A DNA stretch of 64,000 bases, taken from the IMG/VR virus record IMGVR_UViG_3300042350_002797, positions 124,001 to 188,000 of that record; one strand, given 5' to 3'. Below are positions 39,354 through 50,090 of the stretch, piece after piece. Below the pieces are notes generated by a model, which ran no database searches, had not been told where the DNA came from, and saw only the letters and a program-made list of their open reading frames with translations. Position 1 is the stretch's first letter. The number at the start of each line of letters is the position of its first letter. The position numbers and the translations under genes are program-made.

Positions 39354-40894
39354 TTTATACTTTCTTCAAGTTCATCAAGTTTATCTTCGGAAAAGTCTTC
39401 AACGACGTCAGATTGTACATTATCATTATCATTATCGTCAAAGAATTTGGCAAAATTGGTATTTGCGTTTATAGTGCGTTTTCCTGTGTAACCTCTAGTG
39501 CCAGGAATTGCCATCCAAAACTTACTAAATTCTTCTACGATTTGATCAGCAACTCCTCTATCACTAGTTGCAAAAATTGCATCTATTACGTCTTTAAAAA
39601 AGATTCTATCAAATTTTTCTTGAACTAGCATACCAGGACATAAACCCGCATCATATTGTCGATTGGCTTCTTGAACAGAACTAAGATGCATCCAAACATT
39701 ATGCCCCATGAGAATAGCATAAGTGAAACTATCCCAACTAGTTTTATTTTCTTTACCCATCCTATTTAGGTTACCAGGAGCGTAAACACAAACTTCGTTA
39801 GTTTTAACACCATCTAATACAGGGCTATTTTCTACATACTTGAATATCCCATCTTGAATTAATGTATCTCTAAATAATCTTGTATCTGTTGCGTATTGTT
39901 TATTATCTAAAGTAGGTAACATTCTATATAACCACTTCTTACGATCTTCAATTTCTGTCTGTATGTACATTTGGCCATTAGCAGTGGCCAAAAATGGACT
40001 TGCACAATCAAAACTAATAGTAAAGTTTTCATTATGATATTTTCTTACAGCACGTTGAATATCGGTAAGTAATAATGCCCATTCCAATTTACTTGTTCCT
40101 AAGAAGTGCATCCAGTCTTGTTTACCTTTTTCTAATAAACCGTCAAATCTTAAAGATACAAGTCTTTTCAAAGTGAGATGCAAATCGCACATATTTTGTC
40201 CACCCATAGCCCAACCGTTAAAATGTGCATCTGGAAATACCTTCGGATCGCAATAGTGTTTCATACGTTGATACCAATCTTCAGCATCTGAATGATTTTC
40301 ACCTTGTAACACGTTTAAAAATTTACAATTACCATTTCGATTTTTAATAAAGTAGTCATTATTTAGATATGTGCCTTGAACTGCTTCCATATAGGAATTA
40401 ATTTTACTAGCAGCAGCGCCTTCAGGACTACGAGCTACCCAAGCAGGAATATCTAAACACATTCCATAATCCATTAGACTGTCCATCCAAGTCAATACTT
40501 GACTACGTTTTTTCTGTGCAGCCGGACAATTAGGATCTTTCCAGTCGGCTTCCCACTTTCCTTTACCTATCTGGAATCCTCCAGAGTCCCCAAGAACCCA
40601 ACTGTCTCCATTTCTTGGACGATTCCTGAACATAGATTCTCTATCATCATTTTTAGCTAAATCTAAATTTGCGTGACCAGCAGAATATAAACACCACTTA
40701 TAATAGAATAATCCTTTTTGAGGATCTAGATAATTAAGTCCTTCGACATCGTTAATAAAGTTTTGTGGTATTCTGCTAGGTTGTACATAAGGATATCTAT
40801 GTCTCTGATATCCAATGAACGATGCATAAAAGCCGCTAGTAGCAGGTAAAAATAATGCATAATCGTTTTGTGTGGCAGTTAAATCTGTATTCAT
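39350..40894 (-). CDS. dpdA: tRNA-guanine transglycosylase-like DNA base-exchange enzyme (DpdA family)
   Basis: GDSGGFQ, LDIP, NVLQG, GWAMGG, HFLG, FDCASP, late HN; context of queE/folE and of clamp/polymerase. Confidence 0.82.
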   Translation of the reverse strand: MNTDLTATQNDYALFLPATSGFYASFIGYQRHRYPYVQPSRIPQNFINDVEGLNYLDPQKGLFYYKWCLYSAGHANLDLAKNDDRESMFRNRPRNGDSWVLGDSGGFQIGKGKWEADWKDPNCPAAQKKRSQVLTWMDSLMDYGMCLDIPAWVARSPEGAAASKINSYMEAVQGTYLNNDYFIKNRNGNCKFLNVLQGENHSDAEDWYQRMKHYCDPKVFPDAHFNGWAMGGQNMCDLHLTLKRLVSLRFDGLLEKGKQDWMHFLGTSKLEWALLLTDIQRAVRKYHNENFTISFDCASPFLATANGQMYIQTEIEDRKKWLYRMLPTLDNKQYATDTRLFRDTLIQDGIFKYVENSPVLDGVKTNEVCVYAPGNLNRMGKENKTSWDSFTYAILMGHNVWMHLSSVQEANRQYDAGLCPGMLVQEKFDRIFFKDVIDAIFATSDRGVADQIVEEFSKFWMAIPGTRGYTGKRTINANTNFAKFFDDNDNDNVQSDVVEDFSEDKLDELEESIK

Positions 40895-41379
40895 TTTGCC
40901 TCTAATTTTTCTAACAATGATCCTACTTGTACATCTATCTGATTCATAGCTTGTGCTTTAAATGTATCTGAAGTGCTAGATCCGCTTATGATAGTTCCAG
41001 GAGGTATAGTACCAGGCAATGTAGTAGGCCAATGAGTTTGCCCAGGATGTACAGGAGGATTAGTACCGGTCCATGGTCCAGAAGGCACAGCAGTTCCTGG
41101 AGATGTTATTGTTGTAGGTGCATAAGTTGATCTATATGCTCCTGCATTTTCTAAATTACTTAATCGTCTAGTAATATTATTAATATCATCTACTATTCTA
41201 CGTAATGGACCTTTACGTAGTCCTTCAGGATTTTGTTGTGCATTAACCATAGCACTAATTAACACTAAATTTTTTAGTGCTCGTTGTACTGCCGGATTAT
41301 CTGAACTCATTGCTGTATCAAATAAATCCACAAATGTTTCTAAATCAAAATCTGCTTGATCTTTTTCTCTCATTCCCAT
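40891..41379 (-). CDS. Hypothetical protein with P/T/G-rich C-terminal half
   Basis: Likely start ATG 41379 (TAATG); NPAVQRAL helix. Confidence 0.6.
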   Translation of the reverse strand: MGMREKDQADFDLETFVDLFDTAMSSDNPAVQRALKNLVLISAMVNAQQNPEGLRKGPLRRIVDDINNITRRLSNLENAGAYRSTYAPTTITSPGTAVPSGPWTGTNPPVHPGQTHWPTTLPGTIPPGTIISGSSTSDTFKAQAMNQIDVQVGSLLEKLEAK

Positions 41380-41582
41380 TATTGCCTTCCCCATTTAATT
41401 TTTAACCATATACGTTCGTGTATGTAATAATCGATACTCAAAAGTATATGCAGTGCTGTAGCAAACCCTGTACTTTTTGCTACATCACCTATAAATAACC
41501 AAGTCCAAAAGATAGTGAATAACCAAGCAGTGATTCTATATGTTATCATTCGCACTATAGTTCGTGTTTTTGTTTCAATCAT
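41379..41582 (-). CDS. Small membrane protein (DUF2061-like)
   Basis: RT+.R..TYR...two hydrophobic segments...YYIHERIW..+.WG. Confidence 0.7.
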   Translation of the reverse strand: MIETKTRTIVRMITYRITAWLFTIFWTWLFIGDVAKSTGFATALHILLSIDYYIHERIWLKIKWGRQ

Positions 41583-42322
41583 TTTGTATGTGCTGGCAAA
41601 ATGTAATCATAACTGGCTAAACCGCTGTTTACTGTGATCATCATTGCACCTGCATCTGCAATTTTCATTACTTTATCTCCGTCTAGACTAAGAATGTTTA
41701 GCACTTGAGAAATCGGCCAACTCCATACTTGTTTCAATTTTCCAGTTACACCTGCTTCAAAAATAAAACTTCCTGCATGAGTACTTGCATCTCCAAAGAA
41801 GAATACTAAGTTTCCATTTTCAGTTTTTACTTGAAATACAGGTTCTTCACTATGCACTTGAGACTGTAATTTTAATCTTGTAATAGCAGCTAAACTAGGT
41901 TCTAATTCTATATCCCAACTTGCTCCTTTAAATTTCACAGTTTTTAATTTTTCATTAATAATTTGTTGATTCATAAATCTGTAATCATTAACAAAGTCTC
42001 CTGTACTATTTTCAAAGTGTAAACTTACAGGAATTTCTTCACCATTTCTTTCTGCTATAATTACTTCGATTTTAGCATTTTCTTTATATTCAGGATTTCT
42101 TAAATGCAAACTTAGCTTATCTAAGTTAGGCATACCGAATGTTCCAGTAAATTCAGTCACAGGGCTATTAGTTTTAGCATTGATAATTACGCTACGATCT
42201 TCTGCCATAGACTCAATAATAGTTTCTGCTTCGTTTCCAGTAATTTTAACTAAAGGAATATTTCCTAAAGTATGTGTATGACTTACAATGTCTGTTAAAA
42301 TATCTTTCATTTTATTCTCCAT
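41579..42322 (-). CDS. DNA polymerase sliding clamp (gp45-like)
   Basis: About 245 aa directly downstream of the polymerase; FGMPNL, YRFM, terminal YILPA. Confidence 0.7.
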   Translation of the reverse strand: MENKMKDILTDIVSHTHTLGNIPLVKITGNEAETIIESMAEDRSVIINAKTNSPVTEFTGTFGMPNLDKLSLHLRNPEYKENAKIEVIIAERNGEEIPVSLHFENSTGDFVNDYRFMNQQIINEKLKTVKFKGASWDIELEPSLAAITRLKLQSQVHSEEPVFQVKTENGNLVFFFGDASTHAGSFIFEAGVTGKLKQVWSWPISQVLNILSLDGDKVMKIADAGAMMITVNSGLASYDYILPAHTK

Positions 42323-42336
42323 AAGGTTATTTAGGT

Positions 42337-45000
42337 TTACATTTCGAAAAGACTATTAAATGTATTCTTTTCTTCGGTACTTCTGATGTTCCAATTTAAA
42401 ACACCAATAAGATTTTCTAATTTTTTATCGATGATAGTTGCCTCCATTTCTCCATGATCGAATGGCAAATCTTTAAACCATTGCGGCAAACGTAATTCAT
42501 CAACCGGGTATGCTACACTAGAATACTCTAAAGGGTTATCTTTTAATTTACACACAATAACTTTAGCTCCGTCTGTAATATTCATACTGTATTTGTCATC
42601 GAACATACGTTTTAATGTGTTCCAATTAATGCTAGCACGAACATGTCCTGGCATATTGGCCTTTCCTTGCCTTTCTTCTTTATTTTGATATTCCGTGATA
42701 TTATTTGCACGTTTGGGAGAACCTTTCTCCCAGCCAGGGCGAGCCTTAAATGCGATTCTAAATTCACTAATAAAATCTAAAACTTCTCTTTCAGAAGATC
42801 CAGTTAATACCATTTCTAACACATCACTTAAGAAGTCTTGAATAAATTCTGGAGTATCGCTGCGTTTTAGATCTAACCCCATGGCCTTAATTTTACCAGG
42901 CTTACCGTCTACGTCTACTCGTTTGCCTTCTTTATCATAATAAAGAACAGCATAACGTTTTTTTGTAATAAACAATGCTTTAGATCCGACAATTTCTCTT
43001 CCTGCCTTTATAACTTCTCCTCTACTAGTAGGACAATGAAATACATCTTGCATAAATTTAGGAAAAGTTTTATTAACTTCTTCTCCAATTTGATCATACA
43101 ATGACGTTATGGTTTCTTTTGACCACGGAATTTTTCCAGCGTCGATATCCTTTTTAAGCGTCTTATAAGCAGAAAAATAACAACTATCAGTATCGCCGTA
43201 GATAATAGCTTTTCCAACATGATTATATTCTCCTGTTATAATTTCATTTACTTTACTGGCCATGTGTTTGGCAATTTGTCTACCAACTAGTGTAGTACTT
43301 TGTCCAATTCGTTTATCAAAGAATCTGCAACCAGGATTAAGAATAGCACCATACAAACTGTTCAAGTTAATTTTTTTAACTAGTTGTCGTTTATCCCAAT
43401 ACTCTTCTTCGATCTTATTTCCGTTAGAAATACATTCTTTTAGTTTTGCCTGCATTTCTTTACGTTCCGCATACCATCGTTTTAATAATCCAGGTATAAT
43501 ACCTTCTTTTTCATATGTAAAGATTGTACCATTACTGCTTAACATAAATGGCTGATTACTTTCGAATATTAATTTATAAACTTCAGCAGCACTTAAAATG
43601 TCATGAGTATCATCTTCCCAGTCAATAACAACCTCTGTTCCTATTTCTTTATTCATTACAGCTTCATATTCGAGAGAACCAAATTTTCCCTCCCAACTAG
43701 CTGCGAAGCTTTTTCCTTTGGCCATTAAATTTTGTATGTATTCTTCGGTCATAGTTTGACGTAATTGTCCAACAATAGTTTCTGGCCCCATATTAAGCGC
43801 ACGAATAGCACTCGGGTATAGACTGTTAATATCCAGACTTCCTACCCAATCTTGTAATCCTTCTTTAGGATAAGCAACATATGCACCGGCAGCAGCAGTG
43901 TCTTCACGTTCACTCATCTTTGTTCTATTAGGAACTTGAAATCCTCTTCGATGTGCTTCATTGATAATAGCTTGCTCTGTAACAGCTACCGCACCCATAG
44001 TTGTTTGTAGAAGTACAGTATTTTCATGAGCCAGTTTGTTACTTAAATCTAAGAATTTTAATTTTTTATCTAACTTATCAAGCAGCGCACAGTCTTGTCT
44101 ATTGTATCGTATAAATTCTTTGAAGTCATTGTTATACAATTGATCTAACGTACCTTCGTACGGGACTTTTCTTTCACCAAGTTCATATTCCGCGATGGCA
44201 TCCAATCTATAGGAATGTCTTTCTTCGTAAGTATATTTGCGGTATAGTTCGAGGTAGTCAAGGTGTACCCGTCCAACCAAGTCATAGGTTTGTGCTGTTT
44301 TTCCGTAACGTTCATATTCTCTCTTTCTAGGATGTAGATTCCATAGACAAAATCTTCGTGTGTCGTCTTTGCTTAGGGTTTTAGTTACTCGATTCACGGT
44401 ATATGGAATATCGAATCCTTCACTATTCCAGCCACTTAATATATCTGCATCTTGTATTAAATTAAGAAAAGTATCTAACATATCTGCTTCGTTATCAAAC
44501 AAATGAGTGTTAGGAAATTCTTCAACAAGCTTTTTAGCATCTTCCATACTGACACCCTTTGGAGGAATAGCCAAACAAACCATAGTTTCTAGCCATTGAA
44601 GATATACTGCTATAGCAGTAATCGGCATAAAAGCATCGTCGGGGCTTGCATAACCTCTTTCAGGATCGAAGTCTACTTCAATATCGAAAAATGCTGCATT
44701 TAGCTTAGGAGCGTCTTGTCCTAAGTAATGCTCGCTTAGAGATACAAATATAGGGTTAATATCTGCTTCGTACAGAGTTTGATTACTATGTATTTTTAGT
44801 TCTTTGTGAAAATCTTTGCTAGTTTTGCAAACGATTCTACTTAGGGGATCCCCATAGATGCTGGTAAATTTACCTCGAGCATCCGGGTAATAAAAAGTGT
44901 ATTTTACTGGATATTCTTTGAAAACTCTTTTACCATGTTCATTGCGTTCAACAATATGTATGATATCAGAGTCGCGGTTAAAGTATGCGTCTACGTACAT
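42337..45000 (-). CDS. Family B DNA polymerase (T4 gp43-like)
   Basis: Exonuclease motifs FFDIE, GWNS..FD, YN..D; polymerase motifs DINSLYPS, K..LNSLYG, YGDTDS, KKRY. No intein seen. Confidence 0.97.
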   Translation of the reverse strand: MYVDAYFNRDSDIIHIVERNEHGKRVFKEYPVKYTFYYPDARGKFTSIYGDPLSRIVCKTSKDFHKELKIHSNQTLYEADINPIFVSLSEHYLGQDAPKLNAAFFDIEVDFDPERGYASPDDAFMPITAIAVYLQWLETMVCLAIPPKGVSMEDAKKLVEEFPNTHLFDNEADMLDTFLNLIQDADILSGWNSEGFDIPYTVNRVTKTLSKDDTRRFCLWNLHPRKREYERYGKTAQTYDLVGRVHLDYLELYRKYTYEERHSYRLDAIAEYELGERKVPYEGTLDQLYNNDFKEFIRYNRQDCALLDKLDKKLKFLDLSNKLAHENTVLLQTTMGAVAVTEQAIINEAHRRGFQVPNRTKMSEREDTAAAGAYVAYPKEGLQDWVGSLDINSLYPSAIRALNMGPETIVGQLRQTMTEEYIQNLMAKGKSFAASWEGKFGSLEYEAVMNKEIGTEVVIDWEDDTHDILSAAEVYKLIFESNQPFMLSSNGTIFTYEKEGIIPGLLKRWYAERKEMQAKLKECISNGNKIEEEYWDKRQLVKKINLNSLYGAILNPGCRFFDKRIGQSTTLVGRQIAKHMASKVNEIITGEYNHVGKAIIYGDTDSCYFSAYKTLKKDIDAGKIPWSKETITSLYDQIGEEVNKTFPKFMQDVFHCPTSRGEVIKAGREIVGSKALFITKKRYAVLYYDKEGKRVDVDGKPGKIKAMGLDLKRSDTPEFIQDFLSDVLEMVLTGSSEREVLDFISEFRIAFKARPGWEKGSPKRANNITEYQNKEERQGKANMPGHVRASINWNTLKRMFDDKYSMNITDGAKVIVCKLKDNPLEYSSVAYPVDELRLPQWFKDLPFDHGEMEATIIDKKLENLIGVLNWNIRSTEEKNTFNSLFEM

Positions 45001-45011
45001 TAATTCTCCTA

Positions 45012-45059
45012 TACCATTTGTGGCTGGTAAATACCAAAATAATCATTTATGGCTGATTA
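45012..45059 (-). promoter_or_regulatory. Twin stem-loops upstream of the polymerase SD (candidate translational operator)
   Basis: TAATCA-GCCATAAA-TGATTA and TACCA-GCCACAAA-TGGTA, then T-AGGAGA-ATTA-ATG. Confidence 0.65.
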
Positions 45060-45214
45060 GACCTTGCTCTGAGATATTTAGCAAAATTACTTATAAGGTC
45101 AGAAATTTTTTCACATAAAATAGCAATGTTAAGACCAATATCTAAAAGTATAAACATTACTAGACCCATGCCAATCCAACTTAAGAGTATTTCGAATAGT
45201 ATCTGAGCTATCAT
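45047..45214 (-). CDS. Small membrane protein (55 aa, not in ORF track)
   Basis: MIAQILFEILLSWIGMGLVMFILLDIGLNIAILCEKISDLISNFAKYLRARSNQP*; ATGA overlap with the upstream gene. Confidence 0.5.
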   Translation of the reverse strand: MIAQILFEILLSWIGMGLVMFILLDIGLNIAILCEKISDLISNFAKYLRARSNQP

Positions 45215-45495
45215 AACATTCTTACTAGACCTACAATATCAATGGTAACTAACAACATATAATTTGCTAACATCCCAAACGACCTGCGAGTCCAAGCTGC
45301 CCAAGCGTACATAGAACAACCGCTAATCCAAATAGGATAAAGAATAAGCAACGGCGGATTAGGGACGGTTGCTGCCATAGCGATACTACAACCAATACTA
45401 AGGACCCAAGCAAACAACTCGACAGTAAAACGTATACGATTAGATCGCCAATCATCTTTTATCCATTGAAATATGTTATAAACAATATCGTTCAT
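45211..45495 (-). CDS. Small multi-pass membrane protein
   Basis: Three hydrophobic segments in 94 aa. Confidence 0.7.
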   Translation of the reverse strand: MNDIVYNIFQWIKDDWRSNRIRFTVELFAWVLSIGCSIAMAATVPNPPLLILYPIWISGCSMYAWAAWTRRSFGMLANYMLLVTIDIVGLVRML

Positions 45496-45758
45496 TAGTC
45501 TTGAGGCAAGTTTTTAGTAACTCCTAGGATAGTTTCGATCTCATCCCATTCTTCTTCGTGTACCTTCCAGTTATCTTTATGAGCAATTTTGATTGCTTTG
45601 TTGATAATACTAGGTTTAACATTTAATTCTTCTGCAACTGCTTTAACGGTTTCTTTAAGACCTTCTTGTAAATCTTCGATTTCCCTTAAAACGGTTGATC
45701 CTTCATTAATCAATCGTTCTAGTTTAGATTTTTCTTCGGGTCCATACATTCTACTCAT
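45495..45758 (-). CDS. Small dsDNA-binding protein (T4 DsbA/GapR-like)
   Basis: Helical L.E+EDL.EGLKE.VK..AEEL..KP..+NKAIK+AHK; first gene after a consensus promoter. Confidence 0.6.
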   Translation of the reverse strand: MSRMYGPEEKSKLERLINEGSTVLREIEDLQEGLKETVKAVAEELNVKPSIINKAIKIAHKDNWKVHEEEWDEIETILGVTKNLPQD

Positions 45759-45780
45759 AGCATACTCCTATAAAAGCTTT

Positions 45781-45809
45781 ATTATAAGTTAGTAAATTTA
45801 TAATGTCAA
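45781..45809 (-). promoter_or_regulatory. Consensus sigma70 promoter for the replication operon
   Basis: TTGACA-17 nt-TATAAT. Confidence 0.85.
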
Positions 45810-45826
45810 TGTTTATTATATTTTTG

Positions 45827-45850
45827 TTAACCAAAAATTTAACCAAAAAT
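45827..45850. repeat. Tandem 12-bp direct repeat between divergent promoters
   Basis: TTAACCAAAAAT x2, abutting the -35 box of the + strand promoter. Confidence 0.75.
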
Positions 45851-45851
45851 C

Positions 45852-45880
45852 TTGATTTATTTTGTATTCGAACTTATAAT
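45852..45880 (+). promoter_or_regulatory. sigma70 promoter
   Basis: TTGATT-17 nt-TATAAT upstream of ATG 45913. Confidence 0.7.
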
Positions 45881-45912
45881 ACTTGGACTGTGTTAACTTT
45901 CTTACTTACATT

Positions 45913-46236
45913 ATGAAGACTAAAACTATTGCTTTTTCTTTAATTTTTGCTGTTAACAGTGTGTGGGCCAATGCTTGGGATAATCCAAATACGCCATTTG
46001 ACACCAAAAGAAACTTTACTGAATCGTCTACTATTCGTTGGGTGACAGTGGATAATGTACAAGAAGCCTGTGAAAAAGAATCACGTAGCAGAGGCTATAA
46101 TGGTTTTGGTATGAGTGTGTTGGCTTGCTCTTTTTTCAAAGGAGATCAGTGTACAATCATTACTGGTAAGAAAACAACCATGCACACTTTAGGACATGAA
46201 GTTAGACACTGTTTTCAAGCAGATTGGCACAAATAA
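45913..46236 (+). CDS. Secreted small HExxH protein (minimal zincin-like)
   Basis: Signal peptide MKTKTIAFSLIFAVNSVWA; four Cys; TLGHEVRHCF. Confidence 0.7.
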   Translation: MKTKTIAFSLIFAVNSVWANAWDNPNTPFDTKRNFTESSTIRWVTVDNVQEACEKESRSRGYNGFGMSVLACSFFKGDQCTIITGKKTTMHTLGHEVRHCFQADWHK

Positions 46237-46260
46237 AAAAGCCCCTTGCGGGGCTTTTTT
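46235..46260. terminator. Bidirectional intrinsic terminator
   Basis: AAAAAAGCCCC-TTGC-GGGGCTTTTTT between convergent genes. Confidence 0.92.
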
Positions 46261-47098
46261 ATTGAATAGATTTTATATCTACCCCTTTTTGTTTAAGAAG
46301 TATAAGAGCTTGAGCCATTTCTCCACCTGAAAGATCTCCCTTCAGGCCTTGCATTAATGTTTCGCCTGTGTATTCTTGATATTGTTTAGATACACTTTGA
46401 TACTGTTTAGCATCTTTGATTGATTGTAAGACTTTAAATACTGCTTTATTATCTGTTCCGATTCCTTCTATGGCATTTTTTAATTGCCATGCGAGGGACT
46501 TATCTGTTTTCCAAAGTGCAGGTTCTGTCTTAGTTGCATTTGGATCTGTCTTGGTTGCATTTGGATCTGCCATAGGTGCTTGTCCGGATACAGGAAATCC
46601 GTGTTTTTTAGCAATATCTGGATATTTCTTCATAGCTTGTCTAGTTTTGCTATTTGGACCTCCAAGATTTCCGTCAATGCCGTCTTTGTTGGAACCATAA
46701 GTGCCTAAGTCTGCACCTGCTGCTTTTAGATCTTTCTGCATTTTCATAACTGCAAATTGATTTCCAGCGAGAGGTTTATCTCCACCTGTTTTGGTTTTTT
46801 CTCCAGGCATAGGCTGTCTTGGTACTTCCGGCATGCCTGGTTTATCAGATCCGGGAGTAACTGTTGAAGTAGAGTATTTGCTAATTTCATTACTAACACT
46901 GTTGTAACGATCTATTTCTCTATTTAGATCTTGAATGTTTGGGTAATTTGTATATCTTGAATCTTTGCCGAGGTCTTTAAGTTTCAAATATAATGTATTA
47001 AGTTCTGTTTGCTCAGCTGATGAAATTACTTCATATACTGGAGCGTCTATTCGATTTTCAATTTCTGACAATTTTGTCATTAAGTCTTTAATATTCAT
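46259..47098 (-). CDS. Putative internal virion protein: peptidoglycan-binding domain + annexin-like repeat
   Basis: VMKMQKDL..AG.DLG..G...DGIDG.LG...T..AM (PG_binding_1-like); LAWQLKNAIEGIGTD..AVF.VL...Q...+...Y...TG..L...LKGDLSG (annexin-like). Confidence 0.7.
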   Translation of the reverse strand: MNIKDLMTKLSEIENRIDAPVYEVISSAEQTELNTLYLKLKDLGKDSRYTNYPNIQDLNREIDRYNSVSNEISKYSTSTVTPGSDKPGMPEVPRQPMPGEKTKTGGDKPLAGNQFAVMKMQKDLKAAGADLGTYGSNKDGIDGNLGGPNSKTRQAMKKYPDIAKKHGFPVSGQAPMADPNATKTDPNATKTEPALWKTDKSLAWQLKNAIEGIGTDNKAVFKVLQSIKDAKQYQSVSKQYQEYTGETLMQGLKGDLSGGEMAQALILLKQKGVDIKSIQ

Positions 47099-47113
47099 TT
47101 TAGTCCTCTGATC

Positions 47114-48193
47114 TTATTTTCTTGCTGTTCCAGCATATTTCATAATCATAGCTGCATCGTCTGTGCCATAAGGATCAGTATATTCTGGTTCAGGCTCAGA
47201 CTTCTTAGGGTCTGGAACTATTTTTTGATCAGGCACTATTCGTTTTTTAGGATCAGGCTGAGGATTTTGACCACTTGGTTCCTTCATTAATGACTTATCT
47301 AACAGCTCTTTAAATCTAGCCACTGCTGTTTTAAGTTCCTCGGGAGTCATTAACGGATCCTCGCCTGCTGGCTGCTCTGCTTGCCCAGTTGGCTTTTCTG
47401 GCTCTGCTGGTTTTTCAGGAGTAGGTGCTGGAGTTGCTTCTGCACCTTTTTGTAATGCCATATAACGATCTACTAGAGTTTTGACATCAGGGCGTTGATC
47501 TTTCATCGGTCCTAGCTTGCTCATTACATCTGTAAGTTGCTTTTGTTCTTCAGGGCTTAAATCTTTTAATGCTTCAAAAACATAACCAAAAGATTCTACT
47601 AGTTTTCTAGAAATACTTTCGATAGTTACTGGTGCTGCATTTTTACCTTCTGCTTTGTCTAATAGTTTTATTGCAGTAGCAATGTCTTTAGCTAATTCGT
47701 CTTGCTCTTTCTTTCCTGGAGGAAGGTTTATACCTATATCTGTATTTTGACCTTGTGTAGGTTCAGGTTCTGGACTCTTTTGATCGACACCAGTGTAATT
47801 ACTGGTTTTCTTCTGGTCATCAGTTGGTAATGTATCCATTGTACCAGGTTCTTGTTTTTCTTGATTAAAAGTTTTCCATGTGACACCTTCTGGATAATCA
47901 ACAGGCTTGCCATTAACAAACTCTCCGTCGATACTAGTAGGATTAACAGCAGATCTGTCTTCAGGATCAAATTTAGCAAAGTTCCATTTAGCAATTTCTT
48001 GTCTACCTTGATTAGGATACTGCCCTTGTTTCATATGATAGAAATTTCCATCGCTGTGTAACATTAAGGATGTTCTTCCACCGAAGTTATTTTTATGAAA
48101 ATGTGTAGGTTTAAATTCTGTAGGTGCTGCTTCAGATAGTGTCGCACCACTTTCAATTTCTTGTAATTTTGTAATTAAGGATTGTAAGTCCAT
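47114..48193 (-). CDS. Putative internal virion protein, modular and P/E/K-rich
   Basis: N-terminus MDLQSLITKLQEIE parallels the neighbour's MNIKDLMTKLSEIE; LSE|A and VFE|A candidate cleavage sites. Confidence 0.6.
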   Translation of the reverse strand: MDLQSLITKLQEIESGATLSEAAPTEFKPTHFHKNNFGGRTSLMLHSDGNFYHMKQGQYPNQGRQEIAKWNFAKFDPEDRSAVNPTSIDGEFVNGKPVDYPEGVTWKTFNQEKQEPGTMDTLPTDDQKKTSNYTGVDQKSPEPEPTQGQNTDIGINLPPGKKEQDELAKDIATAIKLLDKAEGKNAAPVTIESISRKLVESFGYVFEALKDLSPEEQKQLTDVMSKLGPMKDQRPDVKTLVDRYMALQKGAEATPAPTPEKPAEPEKPTGQAEQPAGEDPLMTPEELKTAVARFKELLDKSLMKEPSGQNPQPDPKKRIVPDQKIVPDPKKSEPEPEYTDPYGTDDAAMIMKYAGTARK

Positions 48194-48215
48194 ATTTCTT
48201 TCCTATTATTATTCT

Positions 48216-48296
48216 TGCTCACTTTTAAGTTACACGGTAGCGAATCGTTTCACTAAGGCAGCAGCCGCCTACGCACCATAGCGGTCCTAAGGTGTG
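48216..48296 (-). ncRNA. Candidate structured RNA (unknown class)
   Basis: 42/81 GC in an AT-rich intergenic gap; three stem-loops, a GAA/GUA E-loop-type internal loop, and a possible pseudoknot. Confidence 0.55.
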
Positions 48297-49061
48297 TTAT
48301 TTTGGAACACAGTTTGGAACTGTGCGTCCGTTCTTTTGTTTTGTTCCTACAGGCTTGTAACCTTTCCAACATGGATTATCTTTCGGATCTCTAAGACCTT
48401 CTTCAACTTCTTTACATCTACAGCCTTTTACATGGTCTCCAGGAATAGGACTTTTACTATCATTTGGAGGCGCTGTGTAATATTCTTCTAATTGTGATAT
48501 CTGTTCGTCTAGTTGATTTTTTAGTTGTCTAATATTGTCTAAAATATCTTCTACTTGTACAACAGGTTTACCTTGAGTATTTGAAGCTCTGCCTGTGCGG
48601 CTAGCTTTCATTTTATCTCCACTACCGCCAATGTGTTTACTAGCTAAACTTAGTCCTGCCTTACGAGGGCCTTTACTTGCTTTGCCCTGTTTAACTTCGC
48701 CACCTTTGGATAGATAATCTTTTACTGCGGAATCTACGTCAGCAGTTTTTTCGTTAATTTTTCTAGAGATTCTTTCTGCTAGTTGTTTGGCACGGTCTTT
48801 ATATCTTTCTTCTGATTCGGATATTTCGTCTTCTATTTTTTTAAAGTATTTTCCGATCATGCTTGGTTTAGCGTCTTTTTCTTTATTAAGAACCGGATTA
48901 GTAATATCTTTTTGATAGTGTTGAACAGCCATTAATTCTGCTGTACTTAGTCTGTTGTTTGATTCATTAACAATAGACAAAAACTTCTCCATATCTTTAG
49001 AAGAAGTTTTGTTAGGTGCCGACGCTCCATCTACAGCAGCTAAGAATTTTTTCATATCCAT
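48297..49061 (-). CDS. Putative internal virion polyprotein
   Basis: Modules separated by VNE|S, INE|K, VEE|G; C-terminal PCWKGYK.VG.K.K.G+.VPNCVP module. Confidence 0.6.
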   Translation of the reverse strand: MDMKKFLAAVDGASAPNKTSSKDMEKFLSIVNESNNRLSTAELMAVQHYQKDITNPVLNKEKDAKPSMIGKYFKKIEDEISESEERYKDRAKQLAERISRKINEKTADVDSAVKDYLSKGGEVKQGKASKGPRKAGLSLASKHIGGSGDKMKASRTGRASNTQGKPVVQVEDILDNIRQLKNQLDEQISQLEEYYTAPPNDSKSPIPGDHVKGCRCKEVEEGLRDPKDNPCWKGYKPVGTKQKNGRTVPNCVPK

Positions 49062-49064
49062 AAT

Positions 49065-50090
49065 TTATTTCTTAGCCGTTTTAGCTGCATCCTTCCAATC
49101 TTTAGCATTAGGTGCTTTAGGATGATTTTTGTCTCTACTAGTTCCTGCTGCTTTACGTTTGTTTACATTATAGTAAAGGCCTTTCTTAACTGCTTCTTCC
49201 ATAGGACACTCTTTTAAACCATGTACTGGACAGCTCTTGCCCTCCATAGTTTGATTACACCCTTTTGACATTTCGTTTGTTTTCTTACGATAAACATCTA
49301 CAGGGCCATGCTTACTACCTTTTTTAGGTAGATGTACTTCGTCGGGAGGTGATGGTAATTTGTCACCACCTTCTTTTATTTTCTTGTCTTTAAGAGCCTT
49401 TTTCATTGGCTCTTTTTTGTTACCATCTTTGTCGAAGTCAAGATAATCTGGCTTAGACGATTCTTTAACTTTTTTATCCTTCTTCGGCTTTTCATCTTCC
49501 TCGTCCTCTTTATCTGCTGCTTGTTTACTACCGCCATAGCGGGATCCTTTTTTAATTCCACTACCGCCACTAGGTTGAGGGCCTCGTTTTTTCTCAAGAT
49601 ACTTTTGCATCTCTTCAAAGCCTTCTTTGACATCCTTTTCTTTGTCATCGTCTTTCTGTTTGCTGCCACCGTATGCCTTGCCTTGCTTTTTTCCAGCACC
49701 GCCGCTTGGCTTCGGTTTATCTTTTTCTTTCATATACTTTTCTAAGTCGTCAAATCCTTCTTCGACTTTGTCAGTTTGTTTTTTAACTTTTTCAGCTTGA
49801 CGCTTTGCTTCCATTAATTTTTGTTGAAATGCAAGACGTACACTTTCACTGTAGACATCGCTGTTTTCTAATTTATCGCCATATTCGCTAGCTTTCATTT
49901 CATATTCCATAAAATGGTATACACTAGCAATATAATCAGCTGCTTTAGTAATCTTAGCCTGCACCCAACCTTCTAGTTCTTGACCTTCTCGGATCATTTT
50001 AAATAATTTCATAGAATAGTTGGCTAATTTGTATAGATCAGCACGGGCCATTGCAGCTTCGTGATTATCTGGACGTCTATCTAAATTCAT
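49065..50090 (-). CDS. Putative internal virion polyprotein, K/E-rich
   Basis: LEGWVQAKITKAADY domain; duplicated GF..+.KY.....P.PSGG.G.K.G..YGGSKQ modules after VEE|G and VKE|G; PDYLDFDKDG; CPVHG; GLYYNVNKR modules. Confidence 0.65.
   Translation of the reverse strand: MNLDRRPDNHEAAMARADLYKLANYSMKLFKMIREGQELEGWVQAKITKAADYIASVYHFMEYEMKASEYGDKLENSDVYSESVRLAFQQKLMEAKRQAEKVKKQTDKVEEGFDDLEKYMKEKDKPKPSGGAGKKQGKAYGGSKQKDDDKEKDVKEGFEEMQKYLEKKRGPQPSGGSGIKKGSRYGGSKQAADKEDEEDEKPKKDKKVKESSKPDYLDFDKDGNKKEPMKKALKDKKIKEGGDKLPSPPDEVHLPKKGSKHGPVDVYRKKTNEMSKGCNQTMEGKSCPVHGLKECPMEEAVKKGLYYNVNKRKAAGTSRDKNHPKAPNAKDWKDAAKTAKK

Follow-up and report, generated by a model that had tools for sequence, protein, structure and literature searches.

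Autogenous translational control of a DNA polymerase is known in detail only for T4, RB69 and close kin, and no structure of that complex exists. In T4, the family-B polymerase gp43 represses its own translation through a single simple hairpin with a 5-bp stem and an 8-nt loop, located in the leader of gene 43 just upstream of the Shine-Dalgarno sequence (SD), with a promoter-like motif close upstream. The T4 loop is AAUAACUC with a UAAC core (UAAA in RB49), the 3' AA/AC loop bases are named as important for binding, there is no evidence for a pseudoknot in gene 43, and some T4-related polymerases do not autoregulate (PMC3014915). T4 gene 32 is also under autogenous translational control, but here a single 5' pseudoknot lies far from the ribosome binding site and nucleates cooperative binding along unstructured RNA (PMC3014915, PMC535899). 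Small pseudoknots of similar size to those discussed below bind the nucleic-acid cleft of a polymerase, as in SELEX aptamers against HIV-1 reverse transcriptase; such aptamers are the subject of PMC2588506. They are artificial ligands for an unrelated polymerase and serve only as a lead, which was not tested here. The guanidine-II (mini-ykkC) riboswitch has two tandem short hairpins with the same conserved loop upstream of an SD; its loops are ACGR tetraloops that kiss each other.

The locus described here lies in a window of 64,000 nucleotides (positions 124,001 to 188,000 of the IMG/VR virus record IMGVR_UViG_3300042350_002797), which is part of a 364,554-bp genome of 36% G+C. All genes in this part of the window run on the minus strand, and the RNA is described on that strand. 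Hairpin 1 (45059–45040) has the arms UAAUCA (45054–45059) and UGAUUA (45040–45045) around the 8-nt loop GCCAUAAA (45046–45053). A linker (45030–45039) follows, made of a UUUU spacer, GGU (45033–45035) and AUU (45030–45032). Hairpin 2 (45029–45012) has the arms UACCA (45025–45029) and UGGUA (45012–45016) around the loop GCCACAAA (45017–45024). After hairpin 2 come one U, the SD AGGAGA (45010–45005), AUUA, and the AUG (45000–44998) of an 887-aa ORF (42337–45000) with Pfam matches to DNA_pol_B (E 4.5e-37) and DNA_pol_B_exo1 (E 3.2e-20). The polymerase is 45–49% identical to those of the jumbo phages Phosso and Atu_ph07 and about 45% identical to those of the 121Q/PBECO4 group. At the DNA level, no match was found in the cultured-phage collection. 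The initial annotation had reported two hairpins with different stems and a shared loop before the polymerase SD, with the stop codon of a 55-aa ORF in the first loop, and this description is exact.

Taken alone, the window's copy is unremarkable. The minimum free energy of the 86-nt leader is −12.8 kcal/mol against −12.93 kcal/mol for dinucleotide shuffles (z = 0.05), the two hairpins are weak (−3.0 and −4.1 kcal/mol), and the octamer GCCAYAAA is not over-represented in the window (4 found, 5.35 expected). Thermodynamics alone therefore cannot support the finding. The 12-mer CAGCCAYAAATG occurs only at these two places in the genome. Hairpins with GCCNNAAN loops elsewhere in the genome are at chance level, and they lie inside genes or form a terminator-like hairpin.

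Comparison with relatives settles the matter. Alignment of polB leaders had been proposed in advance as the check, with a lack of conserved stems or loop in relatives counting against the idea, and both proved to be conserved. A search with the polymerase gave 80 IMG/VR loci with 78–100% identical polymerases. All but one of these showed two hairpins directly before the SD, with different stems and the same loops; the exception, locus L078, carries the element further upstream. On 66 distinct leaders, RNAalifold predicted exactly these two hairpins without guidance, and seven of nine pairs show compensatory changes. In this alignment 98.5% of cells pair, against 15–42% when the partners are slid, 133 cells have both sides changed, and none of 500 shuffles reaches the observed score. 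In hairpin 1, all four stem pairs of the consensus structure covary (GC/AU/CG/UA types), with 97.3% of cells paired. In hairpin 2, 99.4% of cells are paired over five pairs; the middle two covary (CG/UA/UG and AU/CG/GC), and the outer U-A and G-C and the closing A-U are nearly invariant. In total, about 170 distinct leaders from 244 uncultured-phage contigs keep both hairpins. The pattern of different stems with the same loop thus does reflect a selected RNA structure.

The element is restricted to polB. A covariance model of the 62-position element (R1) matches 45005–45067 with 70.3 bits (E 2e-17), covering a purine-rich AAGGU, the first hairpin or pseudoknot, the linker, the second hairpin or pseudoknot, and the SD. 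It is the only strong hit in the 364-kb genome, and the next hit scores 10.9 bits. The model gives one strong hit in each of five other large records of 172–372 kb and one in each of the 80 polB-selected loci, so that a genome-wide repeat or regulon is rejected. A motif scan of IMG/VR for the linker plus hairpin 2, blind to polB, returned at least 120 loci. In 80 of them the downstream region was inspected and each has a polB homologue directly downstream; the 40 further loci carry the same motif. Over all scans, 247 contigs carry the element. PolB is found downstream in 244 of them, and the other three end within about 100 nt. R1 found nothing in the T4 gene 43 leader, and the element is absent from the cultured relatives Phosso, Atu_ph07, 121Q, XbC2 and GAP32, whose polymerases are 43–49% identical; the polymerase family therefore does not require it. 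No Rfam family matches the element at E up to 10 in 40000–50000. A cluster of weak Rfam hits far below the gathering scores (Thr and Phe leaders, MicC) falls on both strands of 46170–46324 and suggests a strong symmetric hairpin, perhaps a bidirectional terminator, between genes.

Each hairpin is preceded by a conserved GGY triplet that is complementary to the first three loop bases, GCC. In the window, the first triplet is GGU (45061–45063), opposite GCC of loop 1 (45051–45053). In the relatives, AAGGY lies mostly 2 nt (range 0–4) before hairpin 1, and an invariant GGU followed by AUU lies before hairpin 2. We searched IMG/VR for elements whose third loop-1 base is not C. Every real element recovered has GCU in the loop and AGU instead of GGU upstream, on three different stem backgrounds (GAUCA, UAAUCA and GCGA). 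Because MAFFT and model-based alignments put the triplet in shifting registers, the combinations were counted by explicit parsing and not by alignment column. Across roughly 171 distinct leaders, about 160 are GGY/GCC, 7 (14 contigs) are AGU/GCU with no mixed forms, 2 are GGU/ACC, giving a U-A pair, and 3 are singleton exceptions: L196 (GGU/UCC), L026 (UGU/GCC) and L319, in which a 14-nt deletion between repeated GTTG removes the triplet but keeps the hairpin. On a quick FastTree of 330 residues of the polB N-terminus, there are five phylogenetically independent contrasts on supported branches. All five are concordant (p = 0.0625, the best that five pairs can give), although recombination of the leader relative to polB could inflate that count. 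No covarying variants at the middle pair of this helix were found in IMG/VR or the metagenome collection, where all extra pattern hits were chance matches. Unit 1 is thus probably a small H-type pseudoknot.

The geometry fits this fold. S1 is 3 bp, L1 is mostly 2 nt in unit 1 and AUU, GUU or UUU in unit 2, S2 (the visible stem) is 4–6 bp, and L3 is 5 nt and A-rich (NNAAA). For unit 2, the pseudoknot rests on analogy. In 66 polB-selected leaders the linker GG is invariant and the U at least 90% conserved, and no HGU variant exists in IMG/VR. The only variation is one-sided, a G-to-A change giving loop ACC in a more distant clade, where the linker stays GGU and a U-A pair results. No other variants occur in IMG/VR or the metagenome collection, and the support for pairing at unit 2 is one-sided only. 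The frequent U-G pair in S1 and the G-U pairs in the stems fit an RNA structure on this strand and not a double-stranded DNA palindrome or cruciform. Other pairings were considered and set aside. Kissing of the two loops, or pairing of loop 1 with the linker, fails on complementarity, since the loops are not self-complementary and CCAUAAA and GGUAUUU match only in parallel orientation. Pairing of loop-2 GCC with the GG of the SD is unlikely, because only 2 bp would form and the connecting loop is too short. Unit 2 seems to be the indispensable part: in locus L121, hairpin 1 is replaced by a longer terminator-like hairpin followed by a U run, while unit 2 is kept.

The stop codon in loop 1 is incidental. 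The UAA of the 55-aa ORF (45047–45214) occupies loop-1 bases 5–7, but an ORF ending there is seen only in the window and loci L005 and L007, plus a doubtful 46-aa ORF in L010 and L011. In most relatives an 85-aa ORF directly precedes the leader and ends about 30 nt upstream of loop 1, yet the AUAA of the loop is still conserved. Termination-coupled unfolding is therefore rejected as a general feature. The 85-aa ORF, which was not itself scanned, occupies the place of the window's DsbA-like gene at 45495–45758 (Pfam Phage_DsbA; phrog_639, 'transcriptional regulator'). The window has gained two small ORFs of 94 and 55 aa (45047–45495) between the DsbA-like gene and the leader, neither with a family match; the 55-aa ORF has no Pfam or PHROG match. 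Just upstream of the DsbA-like gene lies a perfect sigma-70 consensus promoter (45781–45809, minus strand; TTGACA, 17 nt, TATAAT; 12 of 12). Further upstream, a 279-aa ORF (46259–47098) has a Pfam Annexin repeat match (E 7.8e-8, residues 203–258), unusual for a phage, and no PHROG match.

Three observations tie the element to translation initiation. The SD-like GGAG/AGGA keeps its place, starting 0–6 nt (mostly 1–5) after hairpin 2. In five lineages (L078, L098, L106, L107 and L123), a small Cys-rich ORF of 40–63 aa (40 aa in L078) with a zinc-ribbon-like C..C ... C.C pattern has been inserted behind the element, and its stop overlaps the polB start (ATGA, or by 14 nt in L078), so that coupling is kept. 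A UUG start codon is used by polB in 43 of 173 distinct leaders (25%). In locus L179, an ORF of about 205 aa, whose family was not determined, lies between the element and polB (about 20–640 nt downstream of hairpin 2), and polB has its own SD about 10 nt after the stop. Upstream of the element, the promoter-like −10 type hexamer TAAATA (45075–45080) lies 11 nt before the first triplet, and TAAATA/TAAGTA/TATAAT-like hexamers sit at a modal 11 nt upstream in most of 172 distinct leaders. Several relatives have a perfect extended −10 (TGnTATAAT). This suggests a dedicated polB promoter that puts the fold at the 5' end of the mRNA, although its function was not tested and the transcript start is not mapped.

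Compared with the T4 gene 43 operator, the element has the same position in the leader of a family-B polymerase gene next to the SD, and unit 2 has the same stem and loop size with similarly weak stability (−4.1 against −5.2 kcal/mol). Loop 1 also contains UAAA, the tetranucleotide reported in the RB49 loop (PMC3014915). However, there are two units instead of one, the loops are GCCAUAAN and GCCNNAAR, of which only the AA/UAAA part resembles the T4 family, covariation links an upstream triplet to loop 1, and the second hairpin ends 1 nt from the SD in the window against 7 nt in T4. The T4 loop is AAUAACUC, not GCCNNAAA, and the RNAs are not alignable. The proposal in the initial annotation, a duplicated gp43-type operator under autogenous control by the polymerase or another replication protein, is partly supported: right in spirit but, by descent and sequence, wrong as a classification. 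Part of the conserved loop, perhaps most of it, is explained by pairing of GCC with the upstream GGY and need not be a protein recognition sequence, which removes the main argument for a protein recognition loop. The gene 32 operator likewise has a small H-type pseudoknot in the leader of a replication gene, but here two are proposed, they abut the SD, and the gene is the polymerase and not the SSB. Compared with guanidine-II, the loops are 8 nt, are not self-complementary, and would pair with upstream triplets.

We consider a gene-specific translational operator to be the most likely function. In this view, a protein, most probably the polymerase itself when it is not engaged on DNA, binds the folded leader and blocks 30S access to the adjacent SD, holding polymerase synthesis at a set level. 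We give autogenous repression by the polymerase a probability of about 0.5. The structure, its conservation, its restriction to polB and its position next to the SD are established by the comparisons above, whereas the pseudoknot at unit 2, the repression and the identity of the binding protein are inferred; binding by the polymerase was not tested, and there are no binding, probing or expression data. One site per genome, at polB only, points to a gene-specific regulator, the simplest candidate being the product itself, for which T4 gp43 gives the precedent. The genome has no RegA or RegB homologue, while the RegA search was positive in T4 as a control. Since neither hairpin sequesters the SD, any control at this site needs a bound factor, which is only inferred, or acts through mRNA stability.

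Other explanations appear less likely. The structure and SD proximity fit any RNA-binding regulator, such as the single-strand DNA-binding protein (T4 gp32 recognises a pseudoknot-containing operator; PMC3014915), the DsbA-like protein encoded just upstream, or ribosomal protein S1, which would repress or activate polB translation. This is unlikely, as a regulator that also controlled its own gene or a regulon would be expected to have further sites, and none was found in six large genomes; in addition, a ~100-aa gene upstream of polB is also found in phages that lack the element, such as 121Q, XbC2 and GAP32. A protein-independent leader is a slightly better but still doubtful alternative. 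A compact fold at the very 5' end would protect the polB mRNA from 5'-end-dependent decay, or keep the SD unpaired and set a fixed translation rate. The promoter-like hexamer, the single-stranded SD and the RNA–RNA contacts of the conserved loop bases fit this, but it does not explain why only polB out of hundreds of genes carries the element, why two units are kept, or why paired bases of unit 2 (U-A, G-C, A-U) and L1 (AUU) are conserved in sequence rather than only in pairing.

A tandem mini-riboswitch, in which each pseudoknot would bind a metabolite such as a nucleotide-related compound and tune polymerase translation to precursor supply, is very unlikely. Small H-type pseudoknots with A-rich loops next to an SD are the architecture of several riboswitch classes, tandem arrangements occur, and the single-stranded bases are nearly invariant here. 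However, each unit is only about 24–26 nt, smaller than any known ligand-binding pseudoknot, two loop positions vary freely, no Rfam family matches, and no switching mechanism is evident because the SD is not part of either helix. A DNA-level element (cruciform, origin or protein-binding palindrome) or a chance pair of hairpins could be entertained from the unremarkable fold and loop octamer of the window's copy alone, but is effectively refuted: the stems covary while their sequences are not conserved, the opposite of a palindromic protein site, the U-G pairs are strand-specific, and orientation and distance to the SD are fixed in 244 contigs. 

A bolder reading, which we hold to be possible but less likely than not, is that the leader is a previously undescribed class of cis-regulatory RNA, two tandem mini-pseudoknots of about 25 nt. 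It could then be the smallest known metabolite-sensing switch, or a primer-template mimic that captures idle polymerase; in the latter case, autogenous control of a viral replicase would have arisen independently of T4, with a different RNA fold.

The element is a second RNA in the position of the T4 operator, unrelated to it and much better sampled, and it probably controls how much polymerase is made. About 170 natural variants already map which bases must pair and which must stay fixed, which makes polymerase–RNA recognition directly testable, with built-in compensatory mutants. It is also a compact, well-supported new RNA motif for annotating uncultured jumbo phages, in which it marks the polB start, including the 25% of cases with UUG start codons.
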